Below, in pieces: positions 27,198 to 63,672 of a stretch of DNA of 64,000 bases. The number at the start of each line of letters is the position of its first letter. The first letter of the stretch is position 1. Source of the stretch: Oikopleura dioica (taxonomy: Eukaryota > Animalia > Chordata); the NCBI GenBank assembly GCA_907165135.1, contig OU015568.1:9424001-9488000 (forward strand), read 5' to 3'. The translations under genes and the position numbers were made by a program. The notes under the pieces were generated by a model. That model was not told where the DNA came from and did not search any database. It was given only the letters and a program-made list of their open reading frames with translations.

Positions 27198-30100
27198 TTA
27201 AGGATTGGTTAGATAATCGCTTTTCGCATTATAATTTTTCACGTGAATACTTATAACAACGTAGAAACTCGCAACTACCACACAAATTGTCAGTAAAATA
27301 GCAAAAAGATGGTTAATCATTTTTCCATAAAATCTCCACGCAATTGTCCATTCATCTGGGTCCAAATCAGAGCTTTTTCGCATCTCAAGATTAATTGCCA
27401 GCCGTTCTTTGCTGTCCTCTACTTTTTGCTTCAATATCTTCAGAATAACTTCAGGGATGAGATATTTGTCACCGTGAATTTTTTCGTAAATTTTTGCTGA
27501 GAAAAGTGCAAACTTTGCTTTTCTCTGCGTGAAGCAGTACAATTGGTCGAATTGTTTTTCTTCTAACCATGCCGTTGCGAGTGGTCTCCGTTTGCCCAAG
27601 TCGCCGTTTGCCCAAGTCGCCGTCTGCCCAAGTCGCCGTTTGCCCAACTTGGGCAGACGGAGATCTTAGGCAAACGGCGATGTGATTTTTTTTTAATTGA
27701 TTGATCATAAAATGATAGAAGTAAGACAACAATTTCATTATCATCACTGAGTCTGCTGATTGCGGTCTGATTTGCAGAGACTTTCAGCCTGAAAGTTTCA
27801 GGTGAAAACAAGGGTTGTCCTGTTACGTCTTTTGAACGGTTATTAACCGTGGATTCTTGACAAGACCACCAATCAATGGTTATATACGATTTTCGAATAA
27901 ATTCTTGAGCACAAACACATAAATAAGAGACGAAATGAAAAATACAGTATCGTTGACTCTACGGAAGCTTTCCGAAATGACATCGTTTACATTGATAACG
28001 AGGAGCCTTCGTTATATATCATATATTATATATGGTCTAATTATGAGAGTCGCTAAATTCTCAATCAAAGTCCTAAATTAGGACTTCTAATTAGGACTCC
28101 TAATAAACAATTCCCGGAAGAGTTAATCAAGAAGAAAAAAGGCTCCGGTTTACTGAGACTGGATCGTAATTCGGTTGTCATAAGATTGTGCATGTGTTTG
28201 TAAATCAAGCCTGAGTACTCCTCTTCGCTGGGAGGAGGTTTTGGGAAGAGTTTCATCAGTTTTCCCCTTTTTCTCTTTTTCCTACTACTCACAATGACTG
28301 TTTTCTCTCAGTTTCAATCAGAAATAACTCCAAAAATAGAACGGACCGAAAATGAATCACGAGAAACAGTAATATGGGAAACCATCAATTCAACCAAGTT
28401 GGGGATTAGCGCTTGTGAGGACTCGGCGCATCCATCGTTTCCTCAATCTATGGGCCTCGGACGTAAAACTAGCGATTTAACTTTACCACTTAAAATCTAT
28501 CCTATCCTGCTGGTTTTGATTTCATAATTCAAGATGAGAAATTTCCCGATTTTAGTAATTATAAACTGAAATCAAAGTCTCCTTTGCGCTCATAAAAATC
28601 TGAAACCTTGAATTAATTTCTTTAAATTGAATTATGATTATATTTTCAATTTGATCGCCGTTTGCACAAGATCGCCGTTTGCCCAAGTCTCCGTCTACCC
28701 AAGTTGGGCAAACGGCGATCTTGGGCAGACGGCGACTTGGGCAAACGGCGACTTGGGCAAACGGAGACCACTCTGCCGTTGCACCTTAAAAAAGTTATTC
28801 GAGGAGTTTTTTTTATTAAGGACTTACTCAAGATAATCATACTGGCCACACTGGCGATTAAACTGATAATAAAAAGGATCAGTAATTGAGGTGCATTTGC
28901 AACTTCTTTGAAGACCGGGATGTTAGAAGAAAGAACATCCAAGTAGACAACGATGGTCAGTAGCATGGTGACCTGGTAGCTTATCGTCTCTCCACTGCTT
29001 ATGGGAATCCAGAGGCCAACACAGACGAGGATGTTTAGGCACACAATTGGTAGCAAAAGAGTTATTTCGTAAAATGCAATCTGCCGTTGGAGAAAAAATG
29101 AAGTTGATAGCTTTGAGAACTGCTGGTTTTTATTGCTAAAAACTTATTAAAAAAGATGATTTTTTTTCGTGACCACTTACTTTGAGCTCGTGGAGACAGA
29201 ATATTTAAATGCTTTCAAATTCCACTCTGGGTTTTCGTCGAAAAAGGCATTCTTGGCCACATTCAGGTCAGTTTCGTTGTACGAAGTTTCATTTTTCGTC
29301 CGAGAGATTTTTGGTTTTTGAACTTCATTCCACGTTCCAATTCGGAAATTGAGAAAAGTTGTGTCTAAGTTTGGCGTTGCCAAATCAATAGCGCACTCTT
29401 GAAGATCGAAAGGATAGAGCTTTTGAACGATCTCACAGGAAGTCTTGAGGCGCATTTTGATCTTCGTGGAGACGTCCCCGTTGGTTGTTATCTTTGCGTC
29501 GTAGTAGAAAATTATACCTTCATTGAGGTACTCGTCCAGGTTTACGATTTCGAACGGTGGTGTCCAGATCTTTTCGTAAGGAACGAAAATAGAGTAGATT
29601 TCGTTGTGTTCAGAAGCATTCCAGGTGAGACGCTCGTCAGTCCAGGAGAGATAGATGATTATTGTTGAATCCATCGAGCTACATTGTAAACTTTATAAAA
29701 TTGATTTCTGAGGAATTTTTTACCTTTCATGAATCATGACTTCATTAATGCTCTGAACTTCCATCGACGCCTCGATGTTCATCGGAGTAAATTTTGACGT
29801 ATAAATCAAATTTTCGAGCATTTCAAAAAGCTCATCCTCCATTTCATAAGATTCGCCGTTCTCTTCAATACACTTGCCTCCACTTGTTTTGTACGAAGCC
29901 AGCTCTGCACTGTCAAAGAAATAAAATGACTTGATATACTGCTGACAAGCGCGGGATCTTGTAAAATCAGCCGGGATTTCGGCTGAGTCGTAGATGCAGT
30001 AAAAGAAATCAGCAGCATGGGAGTTCTTTTCGTCTTCATCAAGAGATTCGAAGTCGTATTGGTCATCTTGGTAGTAGAAGTCGTAGATATTCGTTATCCA

Positions 30101-47848: not shown

Positions 47849-50087
47849 TTATAAGTAATTAAGGCTACTCGGGCCCGGTTGATCGATGTCTTCCGGGTCG
47901 TAAGAGCAGTCGTGGAAAGAGTATCGAGGCCGTTTCTGCTGTGGAGTGACGCATTCAATATCAGATTCATTATCCGATTCAGATAGGATCACAATTGCCT
48001 CGCGATTTTCCTCGGTCGTGTTTTGGCGCTTTGGGATTCGGGGCGGAGAGGGCGAGCAGGCAGGGTTGAAAGCGTCTGAGGATCTGTTTGGTTTTGTGGA
48101 GTTTACGGCTTCTTCATCGTCGCTGGAGTTAACGAGGTCTATTACTTGCTGTCGCGACTCAATTTCTAGCTCCAGTCGGGAACGATGAACGACTGGGCGG
48201 CGAGGAGCAGGACTATCATCATCTAAAAACGAGTTTAATCAACAATCACTAATGATCGTTTTTCTACCTATGACGATTGTATCGACAACTTCTCTTCGAC
48301 TCTGCATTTCATTGTAAATCCTGCTGGCGATAGTGTTCATAGGCCGCTGGCGACGGTGAGGTAGAAAAGCATGACCTCGTCCCTCACGTGGATGGATGGG
48401 AATGTTGACCGGGTTGAGCAAGGGATTGGAATCGCCGATGGGAATGTTTGACACTCGAGCCATCTGGATTCCCTGTCGACGTTGAGGGGGTTGGCGATTT
48501 AACGATGATGTTCCTGGACGATCAGGAAACTCAGGCTCAAGTCGAGGAGGAGTTTCCGCGTCGCCATCAGCGTTTGAAGAGTCTGTGGAATGGCCATCCA
48601 AGGCTGGATCATCCCAATCAACGACTGGAAAATCTGGAGCAAAAGGAGGCAAATCTTCTTGATCCAAAACGAGTGTTTCAAAGTCATTAGTCGTTGTTCG
48701 CCGTCTCGGCTGTCGATTTGTATTTCTTCGACCGATTCCAGAAGGTCCTGGCGCTTGCTCATCATCGTCTTCAATAAGAATCGGGGTCGGATCGTCGGGG
48801 TCATCGATAGGCATGATTCTTTCCGGGGCACCGGGTGTTTCTGTCTGAGGATTTCGCCGAGTACCCATACGTTTTGCTGGAGCATATCGAGCGTTTCGGT
48901 CATACGATCGGATGTCGTATTCTTTCGCTGATGCGAACCCCTTGAGCTCGTGGATGAAATGTGTGGCGTAGTTGTGCATGTGATGAGTGAGAAACTCGCG
49001 GAACTGACGCGATTCGATTCCGAGTTCGATCGCTTGGTGCTGAATGTCGATGATCAAATCGTTCAAGTATCGTCTGTCAGTTGAGCCATAGAGTGCCACG
49101 ATCTCTCGCCGAATCCAAGGGGTGAGCCGATGTGTTTGAGCCTGAAAAAAGTTTGCAATGATTCTAGCGCTGTAGAAACTAACTCACCTCATTAGCTTGG
49201 TAAAATTCTGCACTGAATTCTCGCTTAAATTGAATTTCAACTCTTCTACCAGTTCGATAGACTGTTCGCCTTGCTCTAATGCAGGATGGCGTCGATCGAG
49301 CAAATCGAGCCTGAAAAATTTAACGATTGATTCTTATAATCTATTCCCGGCGCCGATGAACAGGACTCCTTGGCGCAACGGTAGCGCGTCTGACTCCAGA
49401 TCAGAAGGTTGCGTGTTCGAATCACGTAGGGGTCAAACTTTTTAAATTTTTTGCAATCGCAGGTGAATTTTTTCGCATGCAAAGGTGACATTTCACGTAA
49501 AAAAATCAAAAAAAGTTTGACCCCTACGTGATTCGAACACGCAACCTTCTGATCTGGAGTCAGACGCGCTACCGTTGCGCCAAGGAGTCCTGATGGGGCC
49601 ATCGTAAAGGCTGGTTATGAATGATTACCTCCCACAATCTCTGTCTTCGCTCTCGTTGAGCATTTAACTCTTCAAGTACAGTGTCGATCATATCTTCGTC
49701 CCGCCGAGCTGCCCAAAGTCGTGGCCAAGAGTTCTCGAGTCCGAGAGCAACGATGTTTTCCGGAGGCCGTGGAGCTTGAAGCTCTTCAGCTTTTCTAATT
49801 GGAATCGGTCGACTCTTCGAAGAAAGAAAAAGGCCCTACCTGAATTTCCCCGTCTTCTTGTTGAGCGAGTATCTGATTTTCTTGAATTCCGCATTGCACA
49901 AGGGGCAAGTAGTCTTTTCCATGGCCCATTTTCTCAGGTGCTCCAAGCAGAAGATATGCTTTGAAAGAAGAATTAGCTGGTGAAATTTCGTAAATGATTT
50001 TACCTTGCAATTTTCGGGCTGCGACGGATTAACGATTTCCGACAAGCAGATCGGGCATTTATCCTCTTCATCGTCGGTATCGGGCAT
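47849..50087 (-). CDS. TOPORS: TOPORS-like RING E3 ligase
   Basis: N-terminal RING (CPIC..CKHIFC..CPLC), HRLTPWIRREIVALYG and HFIHELKGFA..YDRNARY, then a disordered tail with hydrophobic-acidic SIM-like motifs. Confidence 0.88.
49364..49435 (+). tRNA. tRNA-Trp-CCA: tRNA-Trp (CCA)
   Basis: GACTCCTTGGCGCAACGGTAGCGCGTCTGACTCCAGATCAGAAGGTTGCGTGTTCGAATCACGTAGGGGTCA: 72 nt, full cloverleaf, A and B boxes, downstream oligo-T. Confidence 0.97.
49518..49589 (-). tRNA. tRNA-Trp-CCA: tRNA-Trp (CCA), identical inverted copy
   Basis: Exact reverse complement of 49364-49435, followed by oligo-T on the minus strand. Confidence 0.97.
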
Positions 50088-52670: not shown

Positions 52671-55600
52671 CTAGGTTTTGACTTGTTTTGGAACATGAAT
52701 TTCTATATGGTTGTTTTTCTTTTTGTAGCTTGGCAGATCGACGGAGGAGGACTCGCTGACGGCTATACTTAGTTCGTGCTGAAATGGGTTAGATATCGGC
52801 TTGTCTTCACAAGGGAAGTTTTGGCATGTTACTATGTACACATACAGGGGGAGTCTTACTGTACTTACTTGAAAATTAACAGTGCCGCAACACTTGAGAA
52901 TTCCTTTTCTTGGAAATGGTCCTTCCTGAAATTCAAAAAATCAAATTTGAGCTGGTTCTACTTTTAACTTCAAGCAAAAACACCAATTTCCAAGTTGGAA
53001 CTAAACAGTAGAGCTCACCCCTGTACATTATTCGATTACAAAAGCCATTTTTAGATAGAATGATTTTAAACGAGTGTTTAAAAAAGTACCTGTTTATACA
53101 GAATTTTCCAATTTGGCTGAATGATGATATCCAACTCTTTGCCCTCCTTTCGTTTAATTTGTCCTAGTCGCAACGCGAACTCGAGGACGAACCTGCCCGT
53201 GAGAAGGAGGTCCCCTTTGAGGCCATCTTGCTTGACTCTAAGTGTGCAGACCCCGTCATCGTAAGGCGACATGCAAATGCTGTGGATATTCTTGACTTCA
53301 ATTGTGCTCTTGAGTTTTAGCGAGTCGGCCGCAAGGATCGACACAGCTGATGTCAAAACGACGATTACTTCTTGCGTCTAAAGCGAGAAGGTAAATTTAG
53401 CCAGGCAAAGTGGAATTATTTTATTTTGGAATTCGGGAGGTGGAATTTGCGATTCGCGGTTTAGTCGAATTCCGCCTATTCTGGAATTTACGAATTTAGC
53501 AAGTCTGACGTACAATGTTTTTAATTTCATTCTTGCGCACTTTTCTACTTGTTAGTAATAATCTCATATTTTAAAAAATTTTTACCTTTCCATCTTTTCT
53601 GTTAACTTTTTGCATGATATCCGCAAAAAGGATATCGCCAAAAAGGTTCTTCGTACTCAGGTCTTCCCATTTCTTCTCCGAATTCAGGTTGATATAATCG
53701 GCTCTGTAGACAAGTCTCAATTGCGATCGGAAAAGCGCTTTTCTTCAAACATTTCTGCACACTCAACTTTGTCAACCAGAAGCCTGTGTTGACTGGGCGT
53801 CAGTTTTCTGATGTGATTTGTGCATCGCCATTTGTGATGGAGTTTTCTGAGCAAGGAGTCGGTTTCTGCGAGTTTTTTGTGGCGCAGAATCGGCCAGGAA
53901 GAATCTGTGGGAGAGGAGGAAGGAAGAGACTTGGCTAAAGCAAGTAAGTACTTCTTTACGGATAGATTGTCCATAAAACGGGCGATTATGGGGGCAGCAT
54001 TGGCTTTGAATAATTTTCGCGTTTCACGGCGACATTTCATCCCACGCCACGCAGCGGCGATAGTGGTCGCGGCATTATGCCGCTTTTGAATAAGTTTGAG
54101 TCTGGCGAGCTCGGCGCGCGCCCGCATTCCCCGAAAAAAGCACTGTATCGTCAGCGTACTCTTCTTCGTTTCCAAATACAGACGGCGCTGCTTGTAGCAC
54201 TTCCACTGCGACGAAATAGAAATTTGGGCGCTTTTCATTGCCGTGAATTTCTTTCGCTGAACGTAGCATCGCCACTGCGCTTGGACCTTGGCGACGATGG
54301 ATTCGAGCATTTTCAAACGGATTTCTTCCAGCTTGAAGATCATTTTTGGACTTCGGATGAAGATCTTCGATCGACCGAACTCGTACTCGTCTTTGGAAAG
54401 CTTCGTGTCTTCCAGAATGCATTTAACCGCGTCCCGGTGGGCTTTATTTGATGAAGGCCAAGTTGAGTCACTTTGATTTTTACAAATATTTTTAAGAATT
54501 CTTTTTCTTACCTCATCATTTTGTATCTATTATGAAACTCGGGATAAGACTGCCTAAAGGAATATCCCGCTCGTCTAACACGAACATTTTCAACAAGCCC
54601 CAAATATCTGATTTGGCTGGTCACGAGGCCCTTGTCAAACAATTTTGGGGCTTTTTGTTCATTCGGTTTGATGCACCTAATGTAATGTGGTTGCTTTTGG
54701 AGCAAGTTCTTCATCAATGTCGACATTGACAATTTGAACTGGTGACCCTGAGTTGGTGGGCGCTTTCGATTGTCGAATTTCGGATCGCCTAATAATTTAT
54801 TATTTTTAATGAATACTGGTAAATAACTAATAGTAATAATAGTAATAGTAATAACTAATTATAATAATTTTTTCGATAATTATCATTATTAGAATAAAAA
54901 ATAATTAATTTCTAAACTATTTCTTTTAAAAATTATTTGATAAACTGATTTGTGAATGAACTAGTTATTTTTATGTGTCACTCCTTCTTGTTAACATTTG
55001 TTATCAAATGGAAAATCAACTCGAAAGATTTACCTTCTGGGAAACATTGTTTCAGGACATGACACGACGAATTGAAAGAGACAGCTGACAGGCTGCTATA
55101 TAAAACATCCTTATTTTTCTCGACGAAATTGATAATCGAGTATTTCACGGTGCCCGCATAATGCGTAATACTGAAGTCGGTGGAGCTTAGGATTGCACTT
55201 TTGTTCGAGTTTTTGGAGGTCGCTTTGTTGCTTTTAGAATTGTTGTTGTTTTCTCGACTCTGGTAGAATTTGCTGGATTGAAGATAGATGTCGAATTTTT
55301 GAAGAAGTTGCGCATCACCTGTTTCTCCTGTTCAATGAAATCGAGAGACGATTCAAGCGATAGAAGGAAAGTAGTAGAATTTAAAGAGGGATAACGATGT
55401 TTACCCCCTGGGAGGTAACAGCTGGGCTCGGCAACCTGAGTACAGGGTCAGGGTCAGGGTCAGGGTTAGAAAAATTTTTCTTGATATTTACTCAGGAACT
55501 CAGGTCAGGGTTTCTCACTCAGTCAGGTACTCAGGGTACTCAGTCAGGCCTGCTCAGACTCAGGAACTCAGGTCAGGGTCAGGTGCCTGACTCAGGCCAA

Positions 55601-58055
55601 AACTCAGGGTTTTTCCACACATAAAAATTTTAACAATTCCATTTTTCGCAGATTACATATAACCTTTAATCACAAAATCGCCCATAAGATGGAAAATTAC
55701 TGTATTTTGACCGCCTTGACATTGCAAATTGACCCTTTTTTGTGTTTTTTTCGCTTACTCAGGCCCTGTGTGAGCAACTCAGGCCTGTCTCTTAACTCAG
55801 GTCAGGGTCAGGCTCAGGGTTTTTTTTCTCGGGCCTCGATTTTACTCAGGCACACAGGTCAGGGCCTGTGTACTCAGTACTCAGGGGCCTGACTCAGGGT
55901 TTTACTCAGGTCAGATTGCCGAGCCCAGGGTAACAGACTAGGTAGATAAACGCTTTCGATGCTAATTAATCAGGATGTGCGATAAGGGGAGGAGATAGAG
56001 GACTTATTCACTCAACCGACCTGCAGTAAATTTCGAAATTAATATTTTTCAATTTTGAAATTTTAAAATAAAAGAAAAATTCAATTCCATTCCTGGTCGG
56101 AGACATTCTTCATCGAGTAGGCCGAGTACCCCGGGGCGCCCCTCGATGAGATTAACAATGGGCACGTTGTTGAAGTACTCAATCTGTTGCCACTGGATTC
56201 CTTCGCGTTGATACTCTTCCTGCTCCTGCTTCAGCGTTAATTCGATGAACACTTGGTGCAGCTTTTCGTTGCAATAGTTGATCAGCAACTGCTCGAAGGA
56301 GTTTTCTGTGAGCACTTCGAATCCGTAAATGTCCAAAACGCCGATCACGCTTCTAATTTCTTTCTTTTCTATTTTGAGAAAGGCGTTGAGTCGCTGGACC
56401 AACCAGTCGAATACGCGCCCGTAAAGAGCTTTACAAAAGGACAGTTGGACGGCTTCCGCTTCCGGTACCGAAAGAGTCACGTGAACTGTTTCGCCTTTTG
56501 CCGAGGAGATCTTGATGGCTCTTCTGGTGAGAGCCTCACTTAGGCTCTCCTCGTGGATCCTTAAATACCACGTGTTAGCCGACGAAATTGCATGCTCTGC
56601 CTTGAACATTAACTGCAAGAAGATGCAGCTGCTCTATCCCGATTTACTCTGGGACACTTTTATTTTATGCAGCGAAATCGAAGGTTCTACTTTCATCAAC
56701 GACCACTGTATAATAAAGCGAAAAAATTGGTTTATTAAAATAGATGTTTTTACTCTTAAAATAGTCTGCTGAGTAAACAAAAAAAAAAGAGAGAAAAGAG
56801 TGTACCTGAGCAAGGTGGCGACCCGGCCGAGTACTTCAGCGTTCTTGACTTGGCACTCGTCGTCACCTTTAGAAGTAAATTGCACATTTCCAAGGTGCAG
56901 AATCGCCGCGATGATTCTCTTGATTGCGCCAATCTCTTCCTCCGCAAAACCTATCGTAACCATCGCGCTTACTAACTCTTCCCAGCGTTTACTAACAACG
57001 AGATTTACATACAAAGAAAATGGCCAAATTTTAGGTGCAAGCGTAACTAATTAGAATATGGGTGTACCTATCATTAATGCCTGGAACGTGCTCGACTCCA
57101 CCACGAGCAAGGATGTTGTAGTCGACCGCACGCCTTGTCAATTGGAAGCTGGCGAGTTCGGCTTCGTCGATTCCGTGAATGAGAAAGTAAAAAATGTGAA
57201 AGTTACGCTCCTCCGCGCACTGGAAAACGACGCGACACTTTTCAAGGAGATAGTTATTGATTTGGCCGCCGACCGGTTGTCCGTCAAAGCCGAAGGCGAT
57301 ATCCATGTACTTGCCGAAGCGCGAGGAATTATCGTTTCGCATTGTTTTCGCGTTTCCGAAAGCTTCCAGGATCGGATTGCTCTGGATAAGCTGATCCTTG
57401 ATCCGATCTATCCCCACTTGCATCGGCGTTACCGTCGAAATGTAGTTCATCATTATCTTCGATGCCTCCGTTTTTCCGGCGCCGGATTCGCCCGTGATCA
57501 GGATGCATTGATCTTCAATAGTAATTTAACTCTTATTTAAATAAGAAAATAGTACTTATTTCGATAATAAACGTCTACTAAGAATTTTCTCTAAAAAGTT
57601 TCTTTTCGAAAATTTTCAAAACCAAATGTTTGAGTAGTACATGGTATACATTTGAATTTTACCTTTACAGAACGTGCGCATTTGTCGATATGCGGCCTCA
57701 ACTAACCCAAACAGATGCGCCGGCATTTCGTACATATTCCGACTTATTTGCGGTCACAAACTGTTTCTTACTTTCTACTTTCTCGTTTCAAAGATAGAAA
57801 TGGATTATTTTGTTCTGACCGTTGCCCATTATATTTTCGAACAATGTCGTCGGAGTATATCGCCACGTTCTGATACGGATTGATGGAAATAACCACGGGG
57901 CCAATGTACGTGTAAATTGCATTTTTCGCAAAGCGCTTCCGTAAATTCTCCAGCACCGCTTCCTCGTTTATGTTTTCAAGAAGGACGAGATCCTGGACGC
58001 CGGTGCCTTTGTCGCCCAGATCCAGCTGGAAACTCGTCCCAGTCACAAATGTCAT
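52671..58055 (-). CDS. MYO1B: Class I myosin (MYO1A/B-like): motor, IQ motifs, TH1 tail; apparent 1-nt frameshift at ~53740
   Basis: [60 protein letters not shown] repeats, and a TH1 ending [12 protein letters not shown]. Includes a GC-AG and a GA-AG intron. Subclass assignment is by recalled similarity. Confidence 0.93.
55422..55928. mobile_element. 507-bp non-autonomous hAT-type element (8-bp TSD GGTAACAG) in a myosin intron
   Basis: 13-bp TIR CTGGGCTCGGCAA/TTGCCGAGCCCAG. TSD at 55414-55421 and 55929-55936. About 25 subterminal TCAGG motifs. Confidence 0.92.
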
Positions 58056-59608
58056 CGCTATTTCTTGTTGAACTTTTCTCTCTTTCCGATTTTTAGCAGC
58101 TCATTCTGAAACTCTCTCTCAATTTCGCTCTCCCTAAAAATCTTCAAATTTATGACCCGGGAGCAAAAATACCGATCATAAATTTCAGATTTGATGAATA
58201 TTTCAAAATGCCATTTTCAATAATCATTAATCAATCCTCATCATTCAATCTCATAAAAATATTGTCTCAGAATAAGAATAGCAGCTCTATTTTGTAAACA
58301 AAAGTCTTTTGGAAAAATAATATACGTTTTTTTTTCACGATGAATTTTGATGCTAGCGCGATCTCTGGGAAATGAAGGTGTCTCTGGTGCTCCACATTCT
58401 GGCCCGCAGCGACCCCACTGAATGATCGATTCAGAATCGGCAGAAAAAAATTCCGCGTTCCATTATGAAAATGAAAATTGAAGAGTAAGACCCGCTAAGC
58501 ATTTACAGTAAGCTTATTAAAAAAAGAGAGAGAGCGCTGCGGTGAAATTTACACAACAGTGACGTTAGACCTATTTTGTGGCGATATATGAGAGTGTATC
58601 GAGGGAAATTGCCAGCGCTGCAAGAACATAAATGCAGAAAAAAGGTCGTTTAAAAGTTACGACTGTTAGTTTTCTTTGCTTAAATACTACCGCCGGGCTT
58701 TTTCTTTCTTGTTTTTCCGCCCTTGGCATTTGTAAATCACTGGAAATTGACTTGTATTAATAACTTTCAAGACAAGTGACTATTTAAAGCCCTTCTATTG
58801 TCAGGTTTCCAAATAAGATTTAACGAAGGTATCGAATTGAAGATTGAAATGCTGATTCATGAATTTTATGTCGCGCACCTGTAACAGTATCCTGTGAGAA
58901 ACACGCAGGAAAAATTCTCTCTGTTCTCAAATCATAAAACCTTTTCTCTCCAAAGATACCCGAAAAAGGGATGACTCCTAAAACTCGAGCCAACTATCCT
59001 CAAGTCGCCACCAACGTGTCAAAAAAGGGATTACACTGTTTCTCAATTCAGAGTGTGTCCGTCAAATGACTTTGTATCCCGCCAAGGGACCAGAAGGATG
59101 GCAAAAAATCTGCCATGGAATATATAAATTCCTCTCACATTCCACCGTGATGAAATCTAACGTTGGTACATGTCTCCTACCCGTGCATTTTCTACCATTT
59201 TCTTATCTACGTCCGCAGCTTTGGGAAAAATTATTACCGATAGTCCCTTTGCGGTTGAAACTCGAGTTAGATTTCGTTAAATACTTCCGGGCGAAAGTTT
59301 ATGTCAAACTGATGACATTGGCAAAACTTTGATGCTCAAAATTTGATCGCCAATTTAGAGAAGAGTTTCTACCGCTGAGAAATTGAAACACATCGGGGTT
59401 AGCATTAGCCATGAAATCGCATTAGTGATCGAAAGATTGAATCTCCTACTAAAGTGAGCAAATCAAAAAATTGCTTTGATTTTGAATGAGAAAAGCACAA
59501 AACTCGGATTGTTACGGAACTTTGAATTTATTAAATGAATGTTTCTTGCACGATAAATGAAACGATAAGTGGCTCATAAACAAATGTCTTTTGAAACACT
59601 TTTTAAAC

Positions 59609-62600
59609 TTAGCGGGATCTTGACCTTGATCCTCTCCTCCTTGATCTGCGCGAGTACCGATCATATGACGGTGATCTTGAGCGGGACCGTGAGCGCGATC
59701 GGTATTTTCGTCTTCTACTAGTAGTTGTCCCTGTGTCCAGGGTGCTCGATTCGTCTCGTCAAATTCGTCCGATACGAGGACGAGATGAAACGAGAAAATT
59801 CGTCGTCAATTCGTCGTCCCGGTGCCCGAAAAATCCTCGTCCAAACTCGTCCTGACGATTTTTTTTTCACTTTCGTCCGACGAAAATTTCTCGTCCGCTC
59901 GGCTCACCGAAAATCTTTTCCGGTCTCGTTTTTTTTTCGTCAGCTCGTCCAACCGAGATTTTAGTATTAAACTGAGTAAAACGGGGCCCCGGAATCGCAA
60001 AAATAACATTGAAATAACTTTCGTTTCCCTTAATATATTTTTAAAATTCAACCTGCATGCTTCACTCATTTTGATGAGTGAAACATCCTCAATTTTCGCT
60101 TAGAATAAACCGAATTCCTGATAAAGCTCGTTTTGTGGGAGTATAGAGCCGAAAATAACTTTATTTTGAACTATCAGATTGACCGACCAACCGACTAATT
60201 TCATTTTTGAAATAGCTGGTCAGTGTTTTGTATCCAAACAAGACCGATCGACAGCCCGACCTGGTCGGAATAGTCAGTGCCGACCCTTGGTTGGACAAGC
60301 TGGACAAGTTTTTTTTTCGGTTTTCGGCAGGACGAACTAGACGAGTTTTTTTCGGTTTTCGGTTCGACGAGCTTGACGAGTTTTTTTTTCGTCCTCGTTT
60401 TCGTCCATTTTTCGTCCGTCCGGGGAGGATTTTTTCGTCCTCGTCCGTCATTCGTCCGGGAAAATTAAAAATTTTGGACGAATCGAGCACCCTGCCTGTG
60501 TCATAATGGTCGTCCAGTTTACTTTCCGTTTCTTTACGATATGACTCGTAGGAAAATGAACTTTCACTCTTGTATTCTCGACTGTCTCTGTCAATTATTT
60601 CAGGCGCTGCTGGAGGTTCAGGAGCACTGTAGTCGACTACTTTCGCCGGCCGACGAGATGCGCGAACTTCTGGTTCTGGCTCAGGTGGACGGTTTTGGGT
60701 CCAATGTAAAATGGGGATTTCAAAATTTATGAGAAATTTTTTTATCTTTTATTATATCTTATGACTTTTATGAAAACCCTATCTATAACCTTCTTCTCCT
60801 GCTTCGGAGGGATCGATCTTGCGAGTTCTGCTCTTTCATAAAGGCTTTTTTCTTCTTGAGTCAATCTGGGTCGATATTGCTTCTGATGAAAAGGAGGTCT
60901 TGGATGGTTGTATCTCGGATTATTGTGCCTTGGTGGGCGCTGATGCACCATTGGTGGTCGGGGATGTCGTAGTCTTGGTTGATGGTGTAAAACTGGTGGT
61001 GCATTTGGGGCGACAATTACTGGTGGAGGAACGGGCTTTTGAACAACTCTAACAGGAGGAATAGCACTTGGTAAACCTTCGGGCATCGGAACTGGTAATT
61101 GATAGTCGTCTGGCAGCCCGGATGGATTTTCCTGAAACACATAAATTTGAAAAGAAGAAGAGAAATGAACTACCGGATCCTCGGCATTCTCCGCCTGCGG
61201 TGGTTCTGCCTCTTTAGGAGGAACATTTTGTTGAACCTTCGAAAGAAGATCCTTCAAATTGTTCACGTCCAAATCCAACAAATTACACGTCGAGCTGGTC
61301 ACATCTGCTTGTATTGGCTTTCTCTTCCTGCTCGGCAGATCTGGAATGTCATCCATTCCTTGCAACTTCAGCGACCCGGGCTCCTTTGGAGGCTCATAAA
61401 CTGGTGGGCCGGTTTCGTCAGAAAGCCGTTTTGGTTCCACCATTTTTTGCTTACTGAAACAGCGAGGCATGCCGTAGCCAGCCGGTGGTCTTTCAAATGT
61501 TCTTCCTTTATGTGAGACAACATCTTCCCTAGCCAAATTAATCGTGCCTTTCTTAGACATAAAATGATGACGCTATAAATATAAGATCGCTTTACCTTCA
61601 TTAGATTCGCTGGAAAATCATCGCCTCCTTTCAAATCAAAGAATTTTGGCGGACTTGGAGGGCCTGGATCTCGACGATAAAGTTCGTCGCGGATCAGTTC
61701 TATTTTCTTCGCTTGATCCTCTTGGACTTTCATCAGTGTCTTGTCTTGCTCCTTCCATTGGTCGATGTAATTTTGAAAGAGCGTTTTATTCGGATGATTG
61801 GCGTGCTGATTCTTCCATTTTTCGCAGTCTTCTTTCCAGTCGAAGTACTCTTTCTTTGACTTCCTGAAAACATTGAGAGTTCAACAACAAAGAAATGACG
61901 AGAGAATTTACTCTTGGAGATTTTTCATTTCGTCCAGCTTCAAATTTAGGTCCTTATCCGTCAGTAATTTAAGATCATTCCAGTCAATGTTTTTCAATCT
62001 ATCGCTATCTGAAATCGTCGCATAGCCACCTAAGATAATTTCATGCCAAAATCATTTTAGTTTCGAGAAATACCAGCTTGCTTTTTTGGCATGTTAGCTT
62101 GGCGCTCCTGCTCGATCAGGCGCGCTTCTGCTTGAGCCTCTGCTCTCATGATTTCCCGGTGTCGGTCGAGTTCGATATTCCACATTCTTCTCTTTCAACG
62201 ACATTTTTCAATACCCCGATAAGGCCATTGTGAATATAAAAAAAGACCGGTTCCTGAGATTCTTCGCTCGATTTGCGAAAACTTACCAAACTGGCATATT
62301 TCCGCATTTTCTCACCTAGCGGGCCTTGGAGATGCCTGAGCTCCCACTCGACGAATTCTGGAATCGGCGGGGGTGGTGGTTCACTATTAATTTATTTTCT
62401 CAACAATTCAGTAAAACAGTTGTAAGACAGACCTAGGTGGTGCAAAACTAGGCTCTGGTGGAGGGGCTGGCTGATCTTTTCGGAAAGAAACTGGCCCTTG
62501 ATGCGGGTTGAAATCATATTTATTTTGCTGATTATTCTGATTGAAAGAATTGTTGGCATGATATGGTCCATAAAAGTGGTTGTTTGATTGGTGAAATGAT

Positions 62601-63440
62601 CCTCCGTGAGCATCCTCCTCTTGACTCTCTTTTCCTTGATACCAGCTAGCTTGAAAATTGGGATCCATTGCATTTCTCCCTCTTGGATTTCTCCCAGGCT
62701 CAGATGGATAACGATAGATGGTGTTTAGCTGTTGGGGTTGACGCGGCACCGATCCAAATCTTGGCCCCTGTCCCCGGCCCCTCAATTGAGGCATACCACC
62801 GGGCCGGGCCGGTCCTGGTGGACGAACTTTTTTAAGTCTCTGGAAATGTATCAAACAATCTCTTGTCTTTAGAAATCTTGATGTTCTCTTATTCTAATCG
62901 GTTTTTATATATCAATTGTTCTCAAAACTTTTCATTCAGTACTGTGCGGTGACATAACATTTGAGCAACTCCTGCAGTAGTTCATGTGAATTTCTCTGAG
63001 GAAGATAAATGTTTGAAAAGAACGCAAAAATGTTTGGAATTTCTTGATATGAATTGTATTGAATATGATTGTGAATTGAAATTTTGTGAAGTTGACCTTT
63101 GAAATTCTCTCGTAGACTCGTCCCTAAAACCGATCCTCGTATAAATAAAAATTCAGGAGAAGAACTTACCTAATCCACCGCTGCTCAAATTCGCATTCGG
63201 TCCTGGAGCTTCTGGCCTCGTCACTGGGCGCCCGCTGCCGCGAAAACTCATTCCAACATGATTTCGAGGATCGTCGCTCTTGCTCTTTTGCTGAAACTGA
63301 TTATTTTGATTCTCTCCGTATCCTCTTCGTCCTTGTCTTCCGTTATTACTATCAGGCCAAGGGCTTGCGCTCTGCGAGCCGCCTCGTCCAGGAGAACCTC
63401 TTCCTCTGTTTCCTCCGCGATTTCCACTGGGCCGCCACAT
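59609..63440 (-). CDS. RG/Pro-rich nuclear protein with C-terminal RS domain (weak YLPM1-like segment), interrupted by a hAT element in its last exon
   Basis: Starts MWRPSGNRGGNRGRG and continues through P-rich exons and YFDWKEDCEKWKNQHANHPNKTLFQNYIDQW. Removing the element plus one TSD restores DDHYDTGTTTSRRRKYRSRSRSRSRSPSY...RSRSR*. Some internal splice sites are unresolved. Confidence 0.75.
59738..60494. mobile_element. 757-bp non-autonomous hAT-type element (8-bp TSD CCTGTGTC) inserted in a coding exon
   Basis: 18-bp perfect TIR CAGGGTGCTCGATTCGTC/GACGAATCGAGCACCCTG. TSD at 59730-59737 and 60495-60502. More than 20 subterminal TCGTC/GACGA motifs. Confidence 0.95.
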
Positions 63441-63672
63441 TGAAAAGTGTCCGATTTCTAAAGTGAAAACTTCATGAAACTTGTTCAGCTCAAATCAAAT
63501 TATTGAAATTGACGCAATTGGAGAGTAACTGGCAGAGTAAAATTGAAGAAATGTCGAGTTAGAAAAATAAAATTGTAAAATCTACATTGACATGAAGGAG
63601 ACTACCAAAATTGTAGAACTTGAACAGACTGATTCCATCTACACAAAATTGAAAATAGAAATAAGAATTGAT

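Follow-up and report, generated by a model that had tools for sequence, protein, structure and literature searches.

A hAT-like insertion in the last coding exon of a YLPM1-like gene of Oikopleura dioica: variant allele or newborn intron?

Can a DNA transposon that sits in a coding exon be removed from the transcript exactly, as an intron born with the insertion, or does it alter the protein? This question is raised by a stretch of 64,000 nucleotides of Oikopleura dioica (contig OU015568.1, positions 9,424,001 to 9,488,000), hereafter the window, for which a sequence-only reading had proposed an exonic hAT element that can be spliced out with zero footprint. The insertion site is the last coding exon of a minus-strand gene, which we call YLPM1-like because relatives of its product carry Pfam Spectrin_YLPM1. 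The exon was compared with three loci: L001 and L002, which are genomic and come from one related lineage, and L003 (a JGI contig, protein P0011), a cDNA-like contig from a third lineage. The joint of L003, ...EKKVID^WNSRE... (here and below, ^ marks a junction), sets the start of the exon, which is composed of two parts.

60495 to 60703, minus strand: upstream part of the last exon (W-T-Q-N-R...D-D-H-Y-D-T-G), based on the L003 joint and on conservation in L001 and L002.
59609 to 59737, minus strand: downstream part of the last exon, a conserved RS-rich tail with the stop codon TAA at 59611-59609.

The RS-rich tail, which reads ...DYDTRRRRSRSRS...SPSYDRRSRRSRRRSRSRSR followed by the stop, is conserved in L001, L002 and L003. 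Since the exon is uninterrupted and ends in the same RS tail at all three loci, it is coding and has a conserved end, and the insertion is confined to the lineage of the window. A 258-residue exon query matched only fragmentary reading-frame calls from related lineages in public protein collections, and the reading frame of the insertion allele had P0011 as its sole match; the collections seem to be without the window's own lineage. In L003, the frame shifts at about 820-840, before the RS tail: frame 0 ends with ...KKTENKCYRL and a stop, and frame 1 goes on as ...NVIDYDTRRRRSRSRS.... An error of sequencing or assembly in L003 is the probable cause of this shift.

The exonic hAT-like element itself is real as described, with perfect terminal inverted repeats (TIRs) and a perfect 8-bp duplication within the coding exon. 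Its parts are as follows; X27 denotes DNA contigs with the same species label, whose flanks diverge by about 1.4-4.6% from the window.

59738 to 60494, no strand assigned: non-autonomous hAT-like element (MITE), 757 bp, 43% GC.
59738 to 59755, plus strand: terminal inverted repeat CAGGGTGCTCGATTCGTC, 18 of 18 positions complementary (pair I4).
60477 to 60494, minus strand: second arm of the terminal inverted repeat, 18 of 18 positions complementary (pair I4).
60495 to 60502, minus strand: target-site duplication, copy 1, GACACAGG on the gene strand, read from the sequence and the X27 joints.
59730 to 59737, minus strand: target-site duplication, copy 2, GACACAGG on the gene strand, read from the sequence and from X27 joints, where 8 letters suit either side.

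On the gene strand, the boundaries read ...CATTATGACACAGG^CAGGGTGCTCGATTCGTC...GACGAATCGAGCACCCTG^GACACAGGGACAACT..., and in a wider frame ...CATTAT GACACAGG ^ CAGGGTGCTCGATTCGTC ... GACGAATCGAGCACCCTG ^ GACACAGG GACAACTACT.... The ends begin with CAGGG, which fits the YARNG end pattern of hAT elements, and the octamer GACACAGG is present at both flanks, as expected for the 8-bp target duplication of hAT elements; an X27 joint with 8 letters fitting both sides agrees with it. The hAT target consensus nTnnnnAn, a weak criterion, is matched on neither strand by GACACAGG or its complement CCTGTGTC. Sixteen TCGTCC hexamers are present in the element, most of them in the outer 210 nt or so on either side, which gives a density of 21 per kb as compared with 0.67 per kb across the whole window. 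The 8-bp duplication, the CAGGG ends and the subterminal short repeats suit a non-autonomous element of the hAT type, and the 757-bp element (59738-60494) holds no transposase reading frame.

Within the window, the 18-mer end was matched only at the two TIRs when up to 3 mismatches were allowed (0.05 matches expected by chance), and the 64 kb hold no further copies of the element. In X27, the summed depth of contigs over the end-proximal parts of the element is about ten times the flank depth, which suggests several other copies. Moreover, loose element ends with differing flanks, that is, copies at other sites, were found among the X27 contigs and among the X1 contigs, which come from a poly(A)-selected metatranscriptome. 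One of the latter, contig 1, corresponds to 59738-59934 and represents another copy of the family, with 7 differences in 197 nt and 145 nt of unrelated flank; either the RNA retains one or more copies, or DNA was carried over into the poly(A)-selected library. A metagenome scan with a 20-mer ending at the target site gave 0 matches. The 18-nt TIR gave 19 metagenome matches, all of 18-24 nt and in GC-rich bacterial contigs, which we rejected as chance.

Removal of 765 nt restores the reading frame and the RS-rich tail, as had been claimed, with a product ending in ...DDHYDTGTTTSRRRKYRSRSRSRSRSPSYDRYSRRSRRRGSRSRSR and the stop. Nine equivalent deletions of this length can be written, and GC..AG ends occur in one of them, 60495..59731, so that the zero-footprint GC-AG register built from the target duplication stands as a matter of structure. 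One further register, 60497..59733, has AG..AC ends with CAC ahead of both junctions. It was considered because the neighbouring intron, 60704-60780, is without G..AG ends.

59731 to 60495, minus strand: hypothetical GC-AG intron, 765 nt, read from the sequence, with a mid-range donor and an acceptor that ranks 20th by score among the 67 AGs of the region.
59733 to 60497, minus strand: alternative exact register CAC^AG...CAC^ (AG-AC), read from the sequence, which would give an identical mRNA.

The exact junction predicted for the allele with G is ...GACACAG^GGACAACT..., i.e. ...TATGACACAG^GGACAACTACT. If the insertion were a nascent intron, the spliceosome of carriers would remove exactly these 765 nt, as GC-AG 60495..59731 or as AG-AC 60497..59733. 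Both splice sites would derive from the duplicated GACACAGG, the protein would be normal and the insertion would be near neutral. The existence of exact in-frame registers speaks for such splicing, as does the exonic CAG^G, a classic proto-splice site, which forms the junction context on both sides of the would-be intron. However, in a simulation that used the base composition of the window, 7.2% of random 8-bp targets had a precise G*-AG register and 1.8% an AG..YAY register, so that the coincidence of a register is weak evidence for splicing.

The sequence-only reading had also called for a check of the empty site in other haplotypes or species, and this site is empty in the X27 DNA and lies in an uninterrupted exon in L001, L002 and L003. 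Two X27 contigs join 59729/59730 to 60495/60496, omitting exactly 765 nt. At one of the joints, 8 letters fit either side, and the octamer is therefore identical to that of the window. The other joint has only 7 of the 8 duplication letters in common with the window, which suggests a base change at 59730/60495, the letter itself not being displayed. The depths of these two contigs, 16.2 and 33.2, amount to about 49, near the flank depth of 60-65, so that the X27 individual looks empty on both haplotypes. The perfect inverted ends and the perfect target duplication indicate a young insertion, and the best explanation of the empty sites is a recent insertion that segregates in the population. 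The word shares of the DNA runs (0.69 to 0.41), tried as a test for carriers, proved useless, because other copies of the element supply the words.

An assembly artefact or a somatic event, with the insertion in no animal's germline, is extremely improbable. The insertion is unconfirmed in an independent run, the X25 word share of 0.69 being explainable by the flanks and other copies, and elsewhere in the assembly, in the myosin gene, there is at least one apparent homopolymer frameshift. However, a mis-assembly does not create a perfect 8-bp duplication around perfect inverted ends, and what sets the empty site apart from the window is precisely the element plus one duplication copy. The frameshift in question, in the minus-strand myosin gene at about 53739-53745, is a one-base shift at an A-run (GAAGAAAAGCG as compared with GAAGAGAAAGCG in L002) that breaks a conserved exon whose frame is continuous elsewhere; the cause is either an assembly error in the homopolymer or a true frameshift.

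Which introns does this genome splice? Using conservation and reading frame, we reconstructed 17 introns in the YLPM1-like gene and the neighbouring myosin gene. Fifteen are GT-AG, one (in the myosin gene) is probably GA-AG and one is AG-AT/AT-AC. The earlier count of three GC donors elsewhere in the window was not confirmed for these two genes, a GC donor being found in 0 of the 17 introns. The 15 GT-AG introns measure 41-257 nt with 66-83% AT, and the median intron in the window is about 56 nt. The probable GA-AG intron has the donor CCAG^GAATGG, which is conserved in L002, and in L001 an orthologous intron has GA as its donor in place of the GT of the window. L003 is without two introns found in L001, L002 and the window, and thus behaves as cDNA. 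One of the two, 61173-61132, is an ordinary GT-AG intron. The other lies directly before the last exon.

60704 to 60780, minus strand: intron before the last exon, 77 nt, with AG..AT or equally AT..AC or TA..CA ends, from L003 as compared with genomic L001, L002 and the window.

Across this intron, the L003 joint reads ...GTTATTGA(C)^TGGAAC..., and L001 and L002 conserve both boundaries; 60704-60780 has no register of the GT-AG or G*-AG kind. The Fritillaria type of splicing, dominated by AG/AC introns, was considered because of this AG..AT intron and the CAC^AG...CAC^ register of the insertion, and it was rejected as a general description since 15 of the 17 introns are GT-AG. About 11-12% of the introns of Oikopleura dioica have been reported to be non-GT-AG (PMC8008620; PMC7072748), with an enrichment of GA-AG (PMC7072748). 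The 2 non-canonical introns among 17 found here agree with this value and not with the approximately 95% of Fritillaria. The tolerance of the genome for non-canonical introns, with the published share of about 11-12% non-GT-AG (PMC8008620, PMC7072748), thus speaks for a nascent intron, whereas the count of 0 GC donors in 17 reconstructed introns speaks against it.

The would-be intron differs from the host introns in length and composition. Its 765 nt are three times the longest of the 15 GT-AG introns (41-257 nt), its AT content is 56% as compared with 66-83%, and its last 20 nt have 40% AT where real introns have a median of 70%; the candidate therefore falls outside the host-intron range on both counts. 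Its splice flanks are less unusual. The candidate donor flank scores 2.4, in the middle of the range of real donors. Apart from G^GT(A/C), the donor flanks of this genome are poor in information, and the position-weight matrices behind these scores, built from only 15 introns, carry little information as well. Many real acceptors in this genome are without a pyrimidine tract, which would also favour a nascent intron.

The RNA of the would-be intron is predicted to form a long foldback, with a minimum free energy of -273.5 kcal/mol (z = -7.9). In this fold, donor positions +2 to +19 lie in a 19-bp terminal stem, opposite the final 19 nt ahead of the 3' duplication, and the 3' side of the stem is where the branch point would lie. 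For MITE-derived introns, the pairing of inverted ends has been argued to juxtapose the junctions (PMC11282704). Paired ends could likewise bring the junctions together here, so that the fold is not decisive. Taken together, the length, the GC content and the placement of the donor and branch region in a predicted stem lean against efficient splicing, and this atypical make-up weighs against the nascent intron.

RNA data were searched over the region 59000-63600 in bulk reads (X6), single-cell reads (X3) and the X1 contigs. The X6 and X3 reads matched just one 33-nt block in this region, 63539-63571, and they probably come from a divergent lineage despite the same species label. The block lies between the start of the YLPM1-like gene and the next gene, and the reads have consistent but different flanks there, which suggests a conserved untranslated or regulatory piece common to the divergent lineage. 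Among the X1 contigs, one of 194 nt corresponds to 60496-60680 without a mismatch and then extends by nine further letters, which on the gene strand are AGACAACTA. It is the only RNA contig with a joined form. This form reads GACACAG-A-GACAACTA, but both duplication copies of the insertion allele have G at that position, and the A could therefore be obtained by neither splicing register. The joined RNA is better explained by an empty allele than by splicing; its source is possibly the 7-letter allele seen in X27. In X6, X3 and X1, zero reads support a nascent intron, the sole joined RNA contig being from a different junction allele, and we regard exact splicing of this insertion as rather unlikely.

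With a probability of about 0.6, we favour a variant allele whose transcript is read through or truncated at the element. A non-autonomous hAT-like transposon would have cut the 8-bp target GACACAGG in the last coding exon and duplicated it. The transcript of a carrier would most likely read into the element, and the conserved RS-rich tail of about 42 residues would be replaced by 109 element-encoded residues.

60161 to 60494, minus strand: element-encoded read-through tail, 109 codons, whose stop codon TAA at 60163-60161 overlaps AATAAA at 60165-60160.

The unspliced frame is open for 109 codons into the element, up to the stop at 60163-60161, and the transcript plausibly ends inside the element, where the stop overlaps AATAAA. 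The insertion would then give a variant allele whose protein has a changed C-terminus, of neutral to mildly harmful effect, rather than a functional intron. Three points argue against this reading. The genome splices non-GT-AG introns (2 of 17, and the GA donor in L001), and its splice flanks are low in information, with a mid-range candidate donor. Furthermore, the RS tail is conserved across lineages and an allele that loses it should be selected against, yet such an allele is in the assembly.

Splicing could also be imprecise. In exonic DNA transposons of maize (Ds) and of Caenorhabditis elegans (Tc1), imprecise splicing is the usual outcome. Here, splicing at cryptic sites in the element or the exon would remove part or all of the element, and the resulting products, some in frame and others out of frame, would retain partial function. 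Several sites score higher than the candidate pair, namely GA 60526, GT 60183 and the AGs at 60029, 59852 and 59712. However, the matrices that rank them were built from 15 introns and are low in information. We consider imprecise removal rather unlikely.

The window has three young insertions, at 59738-60494, 27579-28773 and 55422-55928. The frequency of young insertions in a gene-dense genome can explain insertions in exons without invoking splicing; alternatively, exonic insertions could be tolerated because they are spliced. The element at 27579-28773 has 1195 bp and a 9-bp duplication TGCCGTTGC at 27570-27578 and 28774-28782, and its long inverted ends are composed of GCCGTTTGCCCAAGTC repeats. 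It breaks a minus-strand reading frame right after transmembrane segments resembling those of Cys-loop receptors, and deletion of the element together with one duplication copy makes the frame continuous. The element at 55422-55928 is a hAT-like MITE of 507 bp, rich in CCTGA/CTGAGT repeats, with TIRs at 55422-55439 and 55911-55928 and an 8-bp duplication at 55414-55421 and 55929-55936. It lies in the myosin intron with the probable GA donor, CCAG^GAATGG, conserved in L002, and is missing from the orthologous intron of L002, where the gap between exons is about 197 nt as compared with about 757 nt in the window. An Rfam search of the window found two tRNAs only, at 49364-49435 (plus strand) and 49518-49589 (minus strand); these genes have identical Rfam scores, are inverted relative to each other and lie 82 nt apart.

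Target duplications of transposons that supply splice-site bases are already known from introners, from the MITE introns of Fritillaria and from maize Ds. Wessler and colleagues reportedly found, in the late 1980s, that Ds, a hAT element, is spliced from maize exons in wx, adh1 and sh2 alleles. The insertion described here resembles Ds in being a non-autonomous hAT-type element in a coding exon, with a possible removal from pre-mRNA by the spliceosome. However, Ds donors lie inside the ends of the element and its removal is mostly imprecise, while the candidate sites here lie in the duplication and would leave no footprint. Polymorphic new introns in populations of Daphnia are said to have been described by Li et al. 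in 2009 and shown to be spliced. They share with our locus the presence/absence polymorphism of an intervening sequence in a coding exon, flanked by short direct repeats, and differ from it in that splicing has been shown for the Daphnia introns, none of which is a copy of a transposon.

Introners (Huff et al. 2016; Gozashti et al. 2022, 2025, PMC12130899; PMC11282704) are likewise short DNA transposons with inverted ends and a duplication that lie within genes. In both cases, bases of the splice sites come from the duplication, and relatives have no element at the orthologous site. However, introner families number hundreds to thousands of copies, their splicing is demonstrated and one splice site is usually part of the introner itself, while there is 1 copy in our window and about 10 by depth in X27, the element brings no splice signal and splicing is hypothetical. 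In Fritillaria borealis, AG/AC and AG/AT introns dominate, with a YAY triplet before both junctions (PMC13326754). This species (Henriet et al. 2019; PMC13326754) is also a planktonic animal with a compact genome; the CAC^AG...CAC^ register fits its AG/AC class with YAY, and the inverted ends could juxtapose the junctions. However, GT-AG introns make up 15 of 17 here and about 5% in F. borealis, and just one intron here (60704-60780) has non-G..AG ends. A further comparison is with the G*-AG introns of Oikopleura dioica itself (PMC8008620, PMC7072748), with which our locus shares short introns, weak flanks and a probable GA-AG intron. These three features make it a setting where a GC donor is least surprising. 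However, the known G*-AG introns are short and AT-rich, while the candidate has 765 nt and 44% GC.

A broader possibility is that exact splicing at duplicated CAG^G proto-splice sites routinely neutralises MITEs that insert into the exons of this compact genome. We hold this to be very doubtful. If true, segregating insertions would be introns caught at birth and the source of the extreme intron turnover of larvaceans, and this locus would be a ready-made presence/absence test case. On present evidence, the locus carries a young, polymorphic insertion with a probable effect on the C-terminus of one protein, and such a polymorphism is common and to be expected in a gene-dense genome with active MITEs. 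If exact splicing were confirmed, the element would be a further case of those whose target duplications supply splice-site bases, distinctive as still polymorphic in an animal. It would then be a segregating intron born from a transposon, with the empty allele at hand for comparison, and would let intron gain be observed directly in a lineage whose introns are known to turn over rapidly.
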